A stretch of DNA of 64,000 bases from Paragordius varius (Eukaryota; Animalia; Nematomorpha): NCBI GenBank assembly GCA_964247055.1, contig OZ176050.1, positions 11,594,001-11,658,000 on the forward strand, read 5' to 3'. The notes under the pieces are model-generated. The model was not told where the DNA came from, did not search any database, and was given only the letters and a program-made list of their open reading frames with translations. Numbering within the stretch: position 1 is the first letter of the stretch; every line of letters begins with the position of its first letter. Shown here piece by piece: positions 16,674 to 62,260 of this stretch. The position numbers and the translations under genes are program-made.

Positions 16674-17757
16674 TCACTTTGTTTTTCGGAGTTTGGCTCT
16701 GCGATTCTTAAACCAAATCTAAATATCAAAAACGGACATTAAAGCAATGAAATTAAGAATTAATTTTACGTATTTTTAAGGAGTTAAGCAAGACAATGTT
16801 TTTTACCTCGATTCTTTCTTCACGCAAATTAATATTGCTAGCCAATTGTTCTCGTTCATGGATATCGGGGTAAGGAGATTTCCTAAACGAAAGTTCCAAT
16901 TGTTCGATTTGGTGATCTGTGTAAATAGTTCTATGCCTCCGTCTCCGTTTTTGTTTGAGTGTCGTGCATAAATCCTGAACACTAATTTCGGGTAGGACAG
17001 AACCGTCAGTCGTATTCGATTTATGATATGTTTCACTCATCGTATTATCAACATTATTTGTGGCTGTAGAAATAATGGAGAGACAATTATCAAAGGAAAA
17101 CACCCTGGAAGTCCCATAATGCTGATTTATACCACCAAGGAGAAATGGAGATAGTAAATTACTTTTTGAGGATGTACTACCACTGCTATAGAAGCTTTTA
17201 GTTTCATCGTCATACGAACTATTATTACTGGTTGAAGATAAGCGAGTGTCAATTGCTGACCCAACCCCATCATTCCTAGGTAAATTTGTATTCGCCGAAT
17301 CGATCTCTACATTCTCAACGTAGAAATCTATGTCTTTGCGTGTTTTGTTTAAACTTTCGTGAGTTGTTATGTCTAAAGTCTTGGTAGGGTTAAATGGTAG
17401 AAAATCAGACTTTAAAAATGGGGTTGTTGTCGATGCCCACAGACTGGCATAATATCTCTGTAAGGATTGTATATACTGGCCATATAGAAGTTGCTGATAC
17501 AAGGAGGATGCGTTTGAAGCATTCAATATGGCTTCGTTAAAGTAATTGCTGATATAGCTCTCATTACAATTATTGTTGTGATTTGTGGATGTTAGACCAA
17601 AATATGTAGATGTTTCATTTCTACTATTATTAGCATTGGGAATCGATAGATTTAGTGGGTTCATTGAAGTTAAAAATTGATTTTTTAGCAAGTTATTATC
17701 GGAACTGAAACCCATAACGCAACTGGTATTGTTAAATGGTATGCCAAATTGAAGCAT
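16674..17757 (-). CDS. gsc: Goosecoid, PRD-class K50 homeodomain transcription factor (2 exons, 331 aa)
   Basis: Exons 17757-16807 and 16718-16674, with an 88-nt intron at the PRD-class homeodomain 46/47 position. Homeodomain [48 protein letters not shown]|[12 protein letters not shown] has K50 and Gsc-diagnostic RHRTI, REQLA and LREERxE. An eh1-like FSFDNCL lies upstream. Confidence 0.88.
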
Positions 17758-31308: not shown

Positions 31309-32000
31309 ATTTAAATGGCTACAATCATGACTTTTAAATATTTTAGAAGTATTAATTCTAATTTAATTTAGCGTAAATGTAGAATTAAACTTTTTAAATT
31401 AGCCACAATTAAAAATACGCCTCTGTATGAAAAGCTTTAAACGCCATAACAGAAGCCATATATATTTATTCAATCATCATATTATTATATTTATGAATGC
31501 GCTAATAGTTAGGCGCTTGGCCACTAAGTATATCACATAAAAATATACGTTTGCGATTAAAGCTTACTTACACTCCTGGTCACATGTTTCTATCATCCGT
31601 ATTTCATTTATAAATAGGTGTCAATTATGGTGTTTAGATTAACTAGTTAAATTCCGCTTTGAAATAATTACGGACAAAACTATATTTATATAAATATCTT
31701 TAATAAATCTCGATCTTATTAACAATTTCTCTAAAATAAATTAAAAAATCATTCAAAGGAAGAAACAGTCAATAAGCGATTTTGAAACCACTATTAATAT
31801 ATCGCAGAACCATTCACTATTTATTTAAAATTCCACTTAACTTACCTCCAATTTATTCAAAAGGTTAACGAATCAAAAATTTATATATATTTCATAAGGT
31901 AAAAATCAGTGTTAACAATCAATAATTATTTAATATATAGGCTTAGACTTATTTAATTAAATAAAATCAAAGTAATGCTTTTTTATCAAGCATAATTATT

Positions 32001-32776
32001 ATGATAGATAATAATGATAATCATGTATATAAATTTGAACCATTTAAGATAAAAATGGTGGAGCCTATTAAGATGACGAGCAAAGAATATCGTTTATCTG
32101 CTCTGAAAAATGCGTTTTACAATCCATTTCAACTGAAAGCTGAGGATATACTCATCGATTTATTAACGGATTCAGGCCTTTCAGCCATGAGCTCTTACCA
32201 ATGGGCTCGCATGATGGAAAGTATAAATATTTTTCATCATATATATGTGTTAGAGATTGAAATCGAAGTTTTCGGTCGAATCGGTTGTTTTTTGGTGAAA
32301 GGATTCTGATCTCTATTTGATTAAAGATTACAGACACTTCAATTATTTTAATCCATGTAAATTAAAAGCCACAATAAATATGTTTAAACAAAAAATTTAG
32401 GGTGCATTTTTATTCAAAAGTAAGTAAAATTAAATAAAAAGCTTCTTAAAAATTAAGGTTAACATTGAAGTATTTATGTTTTGGCCGTTTTCTTCCAAAA
32501 AACCTCAGAGTCCGGTTTCCCTAAAACGAATCCAGTTCCGATCCCCGCTATTTAATTATAAAAAACACTTAAAAATAGGTCAAGATGCTTATATGGGTTC
32601 ATCAAGCTTTTCCAAGTTCGTAAACACTGCAACTCATGTGACGGGATTTCAAGAAATCATCCCAACTCAACAAGGCAGATCGGCTGAAAGAATTTTGTTT
32701 CAGGGTTTGGAGTTAAGAAAGCATCACATTGTAATCTCTAATGGCTTTTTCGATACCACGAAATGTGCCTTAGGTC

Positions 32777-32828
<52 letters not shown>

Positions 32829-34577
32829 TATTAAATTTTAATAGTGTGGTTGAAAAAACTAATGCCTTGGAAAATGAAAGCCTAGACTATTTTTTGAACA
32901 AATTAATTTTGATGATGAATTTCATAAATCTATTGTTATGTTATATCATAATCAGATTGTATTGGGTGTACAACTCTAGAATATCCTGAAGTCCGAACAA
33001 AAACTAATAAAACATCAAAATTTATGGGTAACATGAACGTGGAAAAATTCAAATCGTTTTTGCAAGGTTAAATTTTAATAAAATCGAAAATTAAGCCACC
33101 TCTTTCATTTTTTGATTTAATGTAAAAAAACTTTTTCCGGGCTAAAAAAACGATTGTTACAGAAACATTCTCGTTTTAGCCTTGGAAATATTAGATTACT
33201 TATATACCCTTTAATGCAGATTTTTACAATGAATATGAATACTAATCGGAATTAAATTACTTTATATTAATATTTTTTATTTATGGGTTTAATTAATCGT
33301 AAAATTACAAAATTAAATAATAAATCTCCGATAATAGTTAGAATTGTTATACCGTAACCGCGAAAATAAAGTGGTAATGTTTACAAAAAGAAGAGATATA
33401 AAATCAACATCCTTTTTACATTAAAATAAACTTATGGCATTGTAAATTTTTATTTTATGAGAATTTACTATACATCCGATAGCTTTTGACACATATTTTT
33501 TAAAAAATTTATTAACCACAAGTTTGTTATTTATAGGACCCGAACAATATAGAGTAAATCTGTGCATTATGTGCATTACCAATTCGCACTTTAATGGATT
33601 TCCCGTTTCCCTTGAAAACGTTGCCCAAATCTCCGAACTCTGCAAGCATTATAAGATATGTTTTATCCTGGATGCTTGTCGGTTTGCCGAAAACATTTAT
33701 TTCAACAAACGCTATGAGGCTGCGTGTTTTGACAAGTCACTTATAGGTAAGAAACGTTAATTTTGTATTTAAACAAACGGTATATATATTGAAGCTTATA
33801 ATATTGAGAAAGATCTTGAGGTAAACAACTATGTTAAATTTTAATATATTATTGCAAATGATAAATTAGTAGTATAAGATAGGCTTATTACGAAGGTATT
33901 GTAAAAAGCAATGATTTAATTTTTTTTAAAATATCGATGTTTTATACACTATAAATGATGGGTTCAGTGGTGATTGTATTTAAAAAATTATCAATAATTT
34001 TGCACTGATTTAATATGATATTGTAATATTTTTAATTAGTTGAAGCGCTGTGAAATGGTTTCGCCATTATTTTTTTCTTTGCGAATCTTTCCTTCATATC
34101 GGAAAAAAGAATATATATTTTAAGCGGTTTTTCGTTTCTCATAAAACTTAACCGACTTCGATTCAAAGTAGTACTGTAGTTGTGCAATCTAAAGATATCT
34201 AAGGTTAGAGAAATTAATTTTTCAAAAAGTGTTTTTTACTGTCCCAATATTTAAATTATTCAAAAATATTTCTTAATTTTTCACATTTTTTCTATTTCAT
34301 GAGCATTTTTCATACACCAATTCTATTTGGTAATAATCATTTCAGCACTATAAATCCTAAGTCGTTCGTTACAATACATAAAATTTAGAATTTTTTGCTT
34401 AGAAATTTGCCGCGAGATGTTTTCCTACGCTGATGGTTGCTACATCTCTATGAAAAAAGACGGCCTTTGCAACACAGGTGGATTTCTAGCTCTTAAGAGC
34501 TTTGATTTAGCCCAAAAGTGTCGCGAAAATATAATTTTGAATGAAGGATTCCCAAACTATGGCGGTTTAACTGGTAA

Positions 34578-34624
<47 letters not shown>

Positions 34625-37150
34625 TATCCGTTAAATATTTTAACAAACAAATTAGAAAATTTGATTTCTCTGTATTAGGACGAGACCTTGAAGCAATGGC
34701 ACAAGGATTGTTAGAAAGCATTTCTGAGGACTTGTTATCCTACCATTTCAATTTAGTGGAAGATTTTGGAGCTCTTCTTGATCGTTTAAATTTACCCGTG
34801 ATATTACCAACTACAGGATATTCCGTATTTGTAAATGCAAGTGATATATTCCCTGCAATCAATAGATCGGAACACCCTGCCTGGTCCTTAGTTTGTGCCT
34901 TATATGTGGAAGGCGGGATTAGAGCATGCGAAATAGGTAAGCTTAGAATATATTCAGGAGTAAACCTTGCAATAATCTTAAATATGATTTTAATGGACAC
35001 TAATGCAATTATAATGTTAATTAATTACGGATTATACGTATTAACATTATTATTTAAAATTAATAATTGTATAAAAATTATTGTATAAAAAATATTTTAA
35101 TTATTTTAAATTAATATTTGTATCAACAGAAAGAGTGAATATTTAAGAGCGATAGCATTTACGGTCACAAATAAAAAAAATTTATTTTTTGGCCATTTAC
35201 AAATATTTTGATAAAAAAGATACGGCAGATCTCATATGATTCTTGCGTTACTTTTTTAGTTTTGAGGGTTATCAGTCATTAATTTAAAGCATTATTAAAT
35301 TTTTATAATTGAATCCAAAAATCGTAAATTTGGCGCCTATTATAATAGATTTTTTAAGTAGGAGCCCGAAATTTTTTATATATATATATATAATATATAT
35401 TTGGCAAACTTATCAGTATTTCGTCCAAAATTGACGAGTCATGAGCCATTGTGTAAATAAACGCAAACAATCTATGATTAAGCGATAAGTTGTTTAATTT
35501 ATGTTGATTTTTATATCCAAATCCTTTTATTTAAAAAATGCAAATTATGAATATTAATCTTATAATATTTGTTGGACCGTTTTTTAAGTCATTGGTAATT
35601 GGATGTCGCTAAAACACAGAATCGGATTTAGAAGCACCAAATTTTCTTTTGAAATGAAAAATTTAAAGTAAATTTGGTTGCGAACAAATTTTTGTTTATA
35701 TACAATGGTAAAATGTTTCATGTTTTAAAAATTTTGATGGATTTTATTTTTAAAGGAAAATATGCTTTTCCAAAATACGATTTTGATGTGATCGTATAGC
35801 ATTAATATAAAACCTCGCCCTATACTGGTTTTTGCCTTATTTAAAGTGTCCCTATCAACGATTCACTTTTTCTTGGATTTAGCTACTCTGCTAAAGTGTT
35901 ATTAGCATTAAAAGCACTAGTTTTTGGGGCAATTATCATCTAAAAGCACCATGATTAACCATAATATATTGAGAGATTGTTTTAAATGTGGAAAGCGCAT
36001 TTAAGTCATTGTAAAAAGCTGCAAAGATAAACCAAACCTTCTAGACCACCGGTAATCAAACCGCGGACCACGGGCCGCATGCAGCTCTTAAACTGTTTTT
36101 TATGACCCTATTCTTTTTTTAGCTATTTTATGGATTATAAATATCTCCATATATATCTAACAGCTATGTAATTGTTTTTTATTGTAAGGTGCACGGCCCC
36201 TGAAACACAAAAAATATTATATTCGGCACTTTTAAGAATTCAGTTAAATCTACTGTTCTAGATGCTTTATTAGTTAATATAATATTGATTGTGGTAGAAT
36301 TGTTGCCTTTATTCAATATATCTATTAAGCACTAACTCTTGCTTTTTTTGAATATGATTTGTAGAAAACAACCAGTTTTCTGTACTTACCGACATTTATG
36401 AATATAGTTATAATTATTAATAACCATGCAAAATATTTAGGAAGTGTGATGCAAGTTCCTGGTGATTACAATAGACCTCGATTGATACGGTAATATATAT
36501 GAAACCTTTTATTAATATTTATTGTATTATTTATTCTACAAAATGTTGATGGTATCTTACTAATATCTAAAAATATCAAAAAGCTTCCAAATTCACAAAG
36601 TTAAATCATAAAAAATATTTTTTATTTGAATCAAATGCCTGTGATTTATAAATGTCAAATATTTTTGCCTTTAAATACCAGGGTTTAAATTCATTTATGA
36701 CGAAATTGAGCAGCAAAAATTAAAAAACTTTGCTTAAAATAAAAAAACACAGACAAAAAAACTCCTTATAGATACATAATTTCCAAAAAATAATAAATAA
36801 AGCTTTTGACATTTACGCTATGCCTTTTTATGTCTATCTAAAGATTTTCGATTCCAAGAAGAGTCTATACTGCGTCTCACATTCAGCATGTTGCTGATAC
36901 GTTAAAATATATTGCCGATAATAGAGACATGTTTGGTGGCTATGAAATTATTGAAGAAAGCGATATTTTGCGTCATTTTACAATAAAGCTTCGGCCAAAA
37001 ATACCTTATATTTTAACGGCCAGTAAAAACAGCGCAATGACATGGAATGAAATCAAATTGAATAACACATTAACTAAAAGAAATTCTTCAAACTTGGAAA
37101 CAAAGGAAATTGATATTAATATAGATAAAAAGTCTCTGATTTTAACTTAG
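32001..37150 (+). CDS. tnaA: Tryptophanase (tryptophan indole-lyase) / tyrosine phenol-lyase family PLP enzyme, intron-containing (8 exons, 506 aa)
   Basis: Exons 32001-32220, 32579-32773, 32956-33066, 33537-33746, 34403-34573, 34679-34936, 36441-36489, 36844-37150; all GT-AG and in phase (1521 nt). Motifs [58 protein letters not shown] (PLP lysine), [28 protein letters not shown] and LRHFT. Confidence 0.93.
32783..32825. repeat. (TA)n microsatellite at the start of tnaA intron 2
   Basis: Pure TA run directly visible. Similar tracts at about 34581-34621, 51751-51788, 53711-53745, 55929-55965, 61316-61341 and 63476-63515. Confidence 0.95.
36045..36240 (+). mobile_element. hAT terminal fragment/MITE in tnaA intron 6
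   Basis: ccggtaatcaaaccgcggaccacgggccgcatgcagctc is a degenerate copy of the hAT left end seen at 22109. Confidence 0.5.
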
Positions 37151-39279
37151 AACATCAGTAATTTATTATATAAAAACACTAACGCATTGTAATTAACCAA
37201 TAAATATGTTAATAAGCTATTTAATTAGTTTACATTTGAAGAACTAAATTAACTTCATGAACCATACTGTGAATAATATCAAAAATAGGTCGGCTTTGGA
37301 AACATAATTGATATATGCCTTAAGCATATAATAGAGAGAACATTTGTTGAAAAAATTAATACGAGATATGGGTTTTAAAGTTATGCCATGCGTGAGTCGA
37401 ACCCCGACCTTCATTATTTACTTGTCCATCAGCCATGGGCAGGTTAGTGGTTAAAGCTTTTTTTGGTGCTCAATACAATTTGAGTTCTAAATGTTTGGAA
37501 ATAAGAAAGAAGACACTCTATGATAAATATATTCATTTTATGTTAAATATATATATTTAACAAAACATTTTTATGTATAAAAACCCTAGTACATAATAAC
37601 CATCAACATGCAATATATGATCAAATTTAATATCCAGAAAACATGTGATATCACATCACAGATATTCGTAATATCTTAGTCGATTGATGTATTTCAAAAA
37701 TTATACTCAATTGTTTATTTCTTTCTGCTACAATATGATCGTATGTATAAAACTAATTGTATGCCATCCTGTATTTACTATTAATTAGATAGCTTAAACT
37801 CTTTATCCTCAATAATTAATGATGATTCTTATATCAAATTTAACATTCACCGATAACAATGAGACTGATATTGAAGACGACCTTAAAAAATTTAGGTATA
37901 CAATAACATACTTAAAACAACAAAACACAATAAGATTGATTAAAAGCAACATTCCTTAATTAGCGATAATAGCATTTGTTTGCGACATCCTGCATTCAAA
38001 TGACATATCACGGGGTACACAAAAATATCCTAGATATTCTGAATGGACCATTATTCTCATTGTGCTTTTGTTTTGGGGTCTAGGAGTTATTTAAGAAAGA
38101 TGTTTTCCGTTTTATGGTAATTGCTTATCGAAAAATTAGCGAACATTTGCTAAATATAATTATGTAGTTGAAAAAGCTTATATATATATATATCATTTAT
38201 ATAAAACAATAAAATATTTTTCCAAAAATGTGGGACACTGATGATGGGATGTTGTTTATAAAAGATGAACCATTGTTTCGATTCCTAGCCTTGAAAAATA
38301 CCTGCTATGATAAAAAAATACTAGCATAAAACTATTGCACAATTTATTATTTCATATATTATTGTTTTGGTATCATTGAATAGAGCGAGGTGTCTAAATG
38401 CCTTTCAAATTAATTACAGGTATATACATAAATAAATTTAAAGATAAATAAATAAAATATCTTTTAATAACAATGCTGACTGGAAAAGTACTGTGCCAGT
38501 GTGTATAAAATATTAATATTAAATAAGGTGCGATATAGAGGTTATTAATCAATTTCTGTGGGAGAAAAAAAGATATGCGCGATGTATATCAATAAGCTAT
38601 AAATATATTAATTAATAAAATTCAAAATATATTGCACATTTTTCACTATATCGAAAAATCAATCCTCACATAATTTTGACATCATGACCACAATTAACAA
38701 AAATAATATAGGTTTGTCGAGTATGGTATATTAGGAACGTGGAATGATAAATAAAACTGACTTGATAGACTAGAGAAAGGAAAGAATAATGTTGTTTATC
38801 AAAGTTTCCTAAAAATTAGTTGACATTATCCCGATTTCATTTGTAAAAATTTATGTGTAAAAGCATTTTTTCATTGCATAGCACATAAATGGGCTTGATA
38901 TACAAGTTTAAGGGGTTAGGTTATATATTTTCGAGACGGAAATATGTATGATAAGGAATGTTTGGAATGGGTCTTTCAATGAGATCATTTGAGAAATGAA
39001 GGTAGGATATTATTAGAGACAGAAATTCGTCAACACATTGAGTGGGATATTTCTTACGGATTTAGATTATGTCTGGAAATTCGTTATAACATGTTTTTTA
39101 TTTTTTAAAGATCCGATCTGCATAAAAGCTAATCACAGTTTAATCGCTTGTTTATATGCATTTTCCATATTTTTCATGCGCCACTTTTAATAGCTGTACC
39201 GGCTGTACCGTTTGATATTATAGCAAACAACCAATCGGTTTAACATTTCTATTATTCATCTTTGGCCTATTATTTGTTA

Positions 39280-62260
<22,981 letters not shown>

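Follow-up and report, generated by a model that had tools for sequence, protein, structure and literature searches.

A spliced tryptophanase-like gene of the hairworm Paragordius varius and its probable place among metazoan tryptophan indole-lyases

Tryptophan indole-lyases (TILs, tryptophanases) encoded by animals have been published before (Yuasa 2023, Comp Biochem Physiol B 263:110801; also Boya 2021). The gene described here is a tryptophanase-like gene of the hairworm Paragordius varius (Nematomorpha), located at positions 32001-37150 on the plus strand of a 64-kb stretch of contig OZ176050.1 (positions 11,594,001 to 11,658,000; assembly GCA_964247055.1). This whole stretch is referred to as the window and the encoded polypeptide as the window protein. 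The kind of gene is known and no new kind of system is involved. An ortholog from the hairworm Gordionus sp. m RMFG-2023 has already been named in RefSeq, as the 'tryptophanase-like' isoforms X1/X2 (XP_065315992 and XP_065315993). No paper in the searchable literature links tryptophanase with Nematomorpha or hairworms, and the nematomorph member is new to the literature searched.

The closest described relatives are the metazoan TILs of Saccoglossus, Ptychodera, Glandiceps, Nematostella, Liolophura and Haliotis. In a maximum-likelihood (ML) tree they form one clade with the hairworm proteins, with which they share the TIL-type specificity residues, a TN(N) loop variant, short C-terminal extensions and, in hemichordates, an intron, whereas the hairworm genes have six extra introns, a much longer branch and a Ser in place of Asn198 (E. 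coli numbering). The bacterial enzymes TnaA of E. coli and TIL of Proteus vulgaris (PDB 2OQX, 2C44, 1AX4) belong to the same fold family, are colinear in sequence and agree with the hairworm protein in Y74, R103, D137, D227, R230, K270, R419 and H463 as well as in predicted chemistry. Unlike E. coli TnaA, the hairworm protein carries the N198S replacement, is encoded by a gene of eukaryotic structure without tnaC/tnaB operon context, and has a Gordionus ortholog that scores below the cut-off of the TIGR02617 model. The tyrosine phenol-lyases (TPLs) of Citrobacter freundii and Erwinia (PDB 2EZ1, 1TPL, 1C7G) are sister enzymes of the same subfamily, with hidden Markov model (HMM) scores near those of TnaA, but in them the positions of Asp132, Ile388 and His449 of the window protein are taken by Thr, Arg and Phe. 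A further tryptophanase homolog of a eukaryotic parasite, Blastocystis TnaA, favours the reverse reaction from indole to tryptophan and is a precedent for altered directionality (PMC8448343); unlike the genes considered here, it is a protist gene ascribed to a separate horizontal transfer, and it is not in our ML tree.

On balance we lean towards the view that the P. varius gene is the hairworm ortholog of metazoan TIL: a nuclear, spliced, single-copy host gene that most likely comes from the cnidarian-bilaterian ancestor and is ultimately of bacterial type, that few phyla keep and most have lost, and that would encode a cytosolic fold-type-I enzyme dependent on pyridoxal 5'-phosphate (PLP).

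Gene structure and enzyme class

The hairworm gene consists of eight exons and seven introns, all with GT-AG borders. The introns are ordinary in size (105-1504 nt), and none falls within the 20-32 nt range of micro-introns. The coding sequence (CDS) of 1521 nt, ending with TAG, encodes a protein of 506 amino acids. Stops interrupt the tryptophanase-type open reading frames (ORFs) on the plus strand, and the eight-exon model was obtained by splicing these ORFs at GT-AG sites. The gene is present as a single copy within the window. Its exon translations fall in colinear order on the NCBIfam model NF009709 'tryptophanase'; the matches cover profile positions 8-68, 72-131, 176-239, 243-299, 302-386 and 410-460 and have E-values of 1e-13 to 1e-24. 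Together with the seven GT-AG introns, these matches bear out the original prediction, made from the DNA letters and their ORFs, of an intact, spliced 506-aa frame of the TnaA/TPL family in eight exons. The scores of the six exon pieces sum to ca. 401 bits, which is a piecewise approximation, against a cut-off of 285, and the full-length Gordionus ortholog scores 536 bits on the same model. Pfam PF01212 was matched by exons 2, 4 and 5. In these profile searches of exon pieces with PF01212 and NF009709, exon 3 (32956..33066), a variable surface segment of 111 nt with equal size in Gordionus, gave no HMM match by itself. With an E-value of 1e-160 the predicted fold of the hairworm protein is not in doubt.

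For comparison of individual residues we used an alignment of 391 full-length homologs and TnaA from E. coli MG1655. Exon 1 (32001..32220) runs from the ATG to a phase 1 end and encodes the N-terminal arm including a DLLTDSG motif; it covers NF009709 positions 8-68 with 85 bits. The catalytic Tyr78 (E. coli Y74), Arg107 (R103) and Asp132 (D137) are conserved in exon 2 (32579..32773), the last of these in an FFDTT motif that reads YFTTT in every PDB chain of TPL. Conserved Asp221 (D227) and Arg224 (R230) are found in exon 4 (33537..33746), and the PLP-binding Lys264 (K270) is preceded by Lys263 (K269) in the SMKKD motif of exon 5 (34403..34573). Exon 6 (34679..34936) terminates with ...ACEI, in which Ile388 equals E. 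coli I396; TPL has ...ER at this place, and the CEI|GS motif is interrupted by the exon border. The final two bases of the 49-nt exon 7 (36441..36489) and the first base of exon 8 (36844..37150) form the codon of Arg405 (R419). Exon 8 further encodes SIPRR and an LRHFT motif with His449 (H463) and Phe450 (F464), which agrees with the PDB chains of tryptophanases, and has its TAG at 37148-37150. Arg410 (R424) is conserved as well.

The motifs DAY, SMKKD, QGR and IPR all occur in the window protein, and the expectation that the catalytic Tyr, the PLP Lys and the Arg residues of QGR, DxxR and IPR are kept proved correct. The carboxylate-binding Arg is that of LIR|FS (E. coli R419), the codon of which is split by intron 7, and not the Arg of IPR; both are present. 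It is established that the positions with Asp, Ile and His in tryptophanase and Thr, Arg and Phe in TPL govern specificity for one or the other reaction. The window protein has the tryptophanase-type discriminators D132, I388 and H449 (E. coli D137, I396, H463) at the positions of C. freundii Thr124, Arg381 and Phe448. The residues in FFDTT, EIGS and LRHFT that separate the two bacterial enzymes are accordingly all of the tryptophanase type, as first proposed, and TPL-type residues are absent. The TPL mutants Thr124Asp and Phe448His are listed in PMC5054688.

On the TPL model TIGR02618 the Gordionus ortholog scores 393 against a cut-off of 721. It also stays below the tryptophanase equivalog cut-offs, with 369 vs 826 for TIGR02617 and 406 vs 750 for NF053783. 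Since hemichordate and chiton TILs likewise remain under the equivalog cut-offs, TIGR02617 and NF053783 cover bacterial subgroups only, and the HMMs place the hairworm protein at the subfamily level only.

The N-terminus of the window protein lines up directly with that of the bacterial enzymes, without a hydrophobic leader or signal peptide ahead of it, which points to a cytosolic enzyme. At the other end, both hairworm proteins have a low-complexity tail extending past the bacterial C-terminus. In the window it comprises the last ca. 50 codons of exon 8 (36991-37147) and in Gordionus residues ca. 462-524, with a common SSNL-x-x-KEID motif.

In the mechanism that we propose, Lys264 would hold PLP as an internal aldimine. 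Binding of L-Trp would give the external aldimine, with the substrate carboxylate on Arg405, and abstraction of the alpha-proton would lead to a quinonoid. Tyr78 would then protonate C3 of the leaving indole, whereas Asp132, His449 and Ile388 would shape the indole pocket. The predicted products are indole, pyruvate and ammonium. The animal may make its own indole, as first suggested, but the active-site departures and the RNA results described below leave this a conjecture.

Origin of the hairworm gene

The closest protein to the window protein among 1.84 billion representatives is the Gordionus ortholog, with 72% identity over exon 6. The two proteins share 60% identity over 487 residues (BLASTP) and 62% over 460 columns of the tree alignment. 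The 524-aa Gordionus isoform was mapped exactly onto its genomic locus, giving exon sizes of 229/195/111/210/171/258/52/346 nt as compared to 220/195/111/210/171/258/49/307 nt in the window, with exons 2-6 identical in size. All seven introns have the same alignment column and phase in the two genes, and the splice sites are intact in both. The proteins also have in common N198S, about 20 further derived substitutions and the C-terminal SSNL..KEID. On the other hand, some 40% of the residues differ. In exon 2 the window protein has Q104 for the conserved His100 and D76 for Glu72, whereas Gordionus keeps His and Glu; conversely, Gordionus has Ile at the position of F464. The genomic surroundings differ too: the Gordionus ortholog sits between MRPL44-like and LRP-like genes, the window gene between a homeobox gene and UNC-13. 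A search for shared microsynteny, in which the ORFs flanking the Gordionus gene, up to 10 kb to either side, were compared with the window, gave no match.

Further homologs were obtained from cluster look-ups and by using the proteins of Gordionus, Glandiceps and Liolophura as search queries. Animal 'tryptophanase-like' genes were found on chromosome-scale contigs of the hemichordates Glandiceps, Saccoglossus and Ptychodera, the chiton Liolophura, Haliotis, the mussel Potamilus, and Nematostella. Judged by raw similarity, bacteria (47-58%) and other animals are about equally near to each animal group, and for this reason the BLAST view suggests separate transfers. Phylogenetic inference gave a different picture. 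The ML tree (61 rows, 469 columns, model LG+C20+F+G4 with posterior mean site frequencies) contained TPL-type sequences and E. coli TnaA besides the five best bacterial matches of every animal protein used as a query. A metazoan TIL clade of 13 rows was recovered with an ultrafast bootstrap value of 99 and a Shimodaira-Hasegawa-like approximate likelihood ratio (SH-aLRT) support of 95, and the bacterial sequences that are nearest by BLAST fell outside it. The clade contains Nematostella, the two hairworms, hemichordates, chitons and Haliotis, in addition to one Logan sequence and two sequences whose contigs are of megabase size or look eukaryotic. Nematostella is its first branch, and hairworms and hemichordates group with support of 100/89. 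The TPL-type sequences form a separate clade.

The intron positions give additional information. The genes of Ptychodera and Saccoglossus have a single intron, which equals hairworm intron 1 (32221..32578, 358 nt, GT-AG) in column and phase: it is a phase 1 intron within the codon equivalent to E. coli G70, and it is present in Gordionus as well. The probability of such a coincidence by chance is ca. 0.005 under uniform insertion, a value that a proto-splice-site bias would raise. In mollusc TIL genes there is either no intron or one at another, N-terminal position. Not included in the intron comparison were the Potamilus model, which is internally truncated, the genes of Glandiceps and Nematostella, and isoform X2 of Gordionus.

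Several observations weigh against descent of the gene within animals. By plain similarity the hairworm protein is no closer to hemichordates (48%) than to bacteria (47-50%). The hairworm-hemichordate grouping conflicts with the species tree, and in the ML tree the hairworms sit on a long stem branch of 0.78 substitutions per site. In an approximately unbiased (AU) test, a tree in which the hairworms were held with the bacterial clade to which most of their best BLAST matches belong was 26.9 log-likelihood units (lnL) worse; with p = 0.084 it is disfavoured but not formally rejected. When the hairworms were instead held with the mollusc group, as in the species tree, the cost was 4.4 lnL and the arrangement was not rejected (p = 0.40), so vertical descent is compatible with the data.

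The same observations could be read as an independent horizontal transfer, in which the hairworm stem lineage took the gene from bacteria and later gained seven introns, with the placement among animals being an artefact. After itself, the best matches of the Gordionus protein are Bacteroidota- and Gemmatimonadota-type tryptophanases (47-50%, equal to the hemichordate match), the long hairworm branch could be misplaced, the AU test leaves the placement with bacteria at p = 0.084, and the two hairworm loci lack shared synteny within 10 kb. We nevertheless consider such a transfer improbable. The metazoan clade is supported at 99/95 under a site-heterogeneous model, the tree constrained to the bacterial placement loses 26.9 lnL, the hemichordate intron coincides with intron 1 in position and phase, and the cnidarian lies outside the bilaterians within the clade, as fits vertical descent. 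Moreover, the event would have to be older than the split between the two hairworm genera, which differ at ca. 40% of the residues of this protein. At the very least, any transfer is older than that split. We are therefore rather confident that hairworms received this gene by vertical descent and that it belongs to an old clade of metazoan TILs. The recent bacterial acquisition special to this animal that was implied at the outset is not supported, given the 99/95 clade, the intron match with hemichordates and the intron-for-intron Gordionus ortholog. With a cnidarian, hemichordates and molluscs joined to the hairworms in one animal clade, the phylogeny with bacterial and eukaryotic homologs removed the novelty of a transfer.

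Since hemichordates carry intron 1 only, the other introns appear to have been gained by the hairworm stem lineage at proto-splice sites. Six of the seven hairworm introns are in phase 1 (p of ca. 0.004 at a background rate of 30%), which makes each of exons 2-6 a symmetric 1-1 exon. The sequence AG| precedes the intron at four exon ends, and five of the six phase 1 introns split codons starting with G (Gly, Asp, Glu); the same holds for Gordionus.

Some of the other sequences collected for this comparison are unusual. Liolophura sinensis has two tandem TIL paralogs ca. 1 kb apart on one chromosome, which are 50% identical. One is intronless and carries N198H, D227E, I396E and R424G, whereas the other has the canonical residues. 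A paper by Yuasa on cephalopod TIL may, to go by its title, concern a similar case. A 'tryptophanase-like' protein of the chigger mite Leptotrombidium deliense, encoded on a 5.3-kb contig, groups with unnamed sequences away from the metazoan clade, and is due to either a separate transfer or contamination. Among the top matches of exon 6 were proteins of ca. 900 aa from metagenome-assembled genomes of Deltaproteobacteria. These are about double the normal length and contain two tryptophanase-like stretches, in the manner of a tandem-fused duplicate.

Constraint and active-site departures

Divergence between the window gene and its Gordionus ortholog was evaluated from the nonsynonymous distance and from the differences per codon position, since the dN/dS estimate by the Nei-Gojobori (NG86) method fails due to synonymous saturation. 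The dN value is 0.30, with dS saturated, and codon positions 1/2/3 differ at 0.32/0.19/0.59. Variation within the species was derived from DNA contigs, which gave samples of at least 15 exonic single-nucleotide polymorphisms (SNPs) and at least 12 indels. Nine of the 15 exonic SNPs listed are synonymous as compared to an expected 21% (p = 0.001), and all 12 indels listed are intronic, with none in an exon (p = 0.02). Evidently the gene is no relic but is kept by purifying selection.

The expression data weigh on the other side. In the RNA-labelled runs of the species the sampled sequence words do not occur, and mapping of a single such run gave 0 contigs over the gene; these are small libraries kept as contigs, and silence is not implied. 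An unexpressed relic or young pseudogene with a frame open by chance would explain the lack of RNA contigs, but we regard it as very improbable. Frames of 506 and 524 aa are open in two genera at saturated dS and a dN of 0.30, synonymous polymorphisms are in excess with indels confined to introns, and neither species has a broken splice site. In addition, RefSeq lists two isoforms for Gordionus, which usually reflects transcript support. The gene is presumably transcribed.

The active site shows a departure at the position of E. coli N198, which lies in a loop encoded by exon 4 and equals N185 of TPL. Here both hairworms have Ser (Ser192 in the window protein), whereas 378 of 382 other homologs have Asn, and the alignment of this region to the PDB chains of solved structures is ungapped. 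In TPL, replacement of the equivalent residue (Asn185Ala) destabilises the quinonoid, according to the summary of Barbolina 2000 given in PMC5054688. The change is accompanied by others. Of 124 columns with a conservation of at least 95%, 27 are changed in the window protein and 24 in the Gordionus protein, where the 95th percentile of other sequences is 22. Hemichordate TILs deviate at 10-12 of these columns, so the hairworms deviate at twice as many. About 20 of the deviations are common to both hairworm genera. These shared changes and the long stem branch indicate that the hairworm lineage first altered the enzyme and has since kept it in the altered form. The deviations and the Asn-to-Ser change count against our preferred reading, and N198S together with the many stem-lineage substitutions suggests a catalytic efficiency that is lower than, or altered from, that of bacterial enzymes.

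A larger shift would mean that the fold and PLP site are kept but that the protein no longer acts mainly as a lyase converting Trp to indole. It could then serve in reverse salvage of indole to Trp, in conversion of other beta-substituted amino acids (Cys or Ser to H2S or pyruvate), or as a weak or regulatory subunit. The fixation of N198S in both genera, the 24-27 deviations at highly conserved columns and the long stem branch are in line with this, as are the replacement of His100 by Gln and of the Glu72 equivalent by Asp in P. varius. In TPL structures the Glu72 equivalent is a residue of the K+ site. The preference of Blastocystis TnaA for the indole-to-Trp direction offers a precedent (PMC8448343), and in a panel assay eukaryotic TILs were clearly less active in vitro than bacterial TILs (PMC12980246). 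However, apart from N198 the substrate- and PLP-contacting residues are all kept, including the indole-specific Asp, His and Ile. Ser is still able to donate a hydrogen bond, and the strong purifying selection points to a specific retained activity. A shifted or degraded function thus seems to us rather unlikely. The hairworm protein is probably a constrained PLP-dependent tryptophan indole-lyase, with modest or altered efficiency from N198S.

Genomic setting and biological meaning

The bacterial look of the protein raises the question of contamination or an assembly chimera, and apart from that look nothing argues for either. The seven spliceosomal introns speak against both, and so does the base composition: the CDS has 37% GC and the introns 24%, in a genome and window of ca. 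27% GC. The original prediction had placed the gene between bona fide animal genes, and this was confirmed. A homeodomain ORF (16753..17757, minus strand; PF00046, 1.3e-12) lies upstream, and UNC-13 exons with the MUN domain (40757..45593, minus strand; PF06292, up to 1e-26) lie downstream, convergent with the lyase gene. Logan contigs from DNA runs of two individuals of the species cover exons and introns at the depth of the flanks, bridge the exon-intron borders and have half-depth heterozygous sites over the gene. The initial statement that the gene is not bacterial contamination is thereby upheld, and we consider contamination or a chimera refuted, with practically no probability left to it. 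In a run labelled as another organism, compared over window positions 31800-37400, we observed low-depth contigs identical to the window, introns included. Worm DNA is therefore present in that sample, due to host tissue, a mixed sample or a label issue.

An AATAAA sequence at 37199..37204 on the plus strand, 49 nt 3' of the stop, is likely the polyadenylation signal. The introns had been predicted to contain host transposable elements and microsatellites, and only the latter were found: (TA)23 in intron 2 (32779..32825), where the DNA contigs break, (TA)20 in intron 5 (34581..34621) and (TA)12 in intron 6 (35377..35400). No intron segment had a second copy when all introns were compared to the 64-kb window by blastn, and an inverted-repeat scan of intron 6 gave AT-rich chance pairs only and no element with terminal inverted repeats. 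At 36051-36082 in intron 6 a GC-rich core of ca. 30 nt is present, where contigs of one DNA run fork into unrelated flanks and depth increases ca. 2.5-fold. It has no second copy within the window and is probably a short dispersed repeat, the sole hint of such an element in the introns.

With the hairworm gene, Nematomorpha, a phylum of ecdysozoan, host-manipulating parasites, joins the short list of phyla with animal-encoded tryptophanases, which are rare and little studied. Both the well-supported all-animal clade and an intron that a protostome has in common with deuterostomes speak for a single ancient gene that was lost many times, rather than for repeated transfers of recent date. To enzymologists, the fixed Asn-to-Ser replacement is a natural variant at a quinonoid-stabilising position. 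The modest interest of the gene as such stems from its occurrence in a lineage of behaviour-manipulating parasites. It is conceivable, if quite doubtful, that the enzyme is active in the parasitic stage and alters the Trp and indole chemistry of the haemocoel of the insect host, either by draining the precursor of serotonin and kynurenine or by releasing membrane-permeant indole as a neuroactive signal, and so forms part of the behavioural manipulation. If true, a host-directed role in the parasitic stage could explain why a gene-poor parasite lineage kept the gene and remodelled its active site. For hairworm biology, the gene provides a concrete candidate enzyme for a link between the parasite and the tryptophan, serotonin and indole chemistry of its host.

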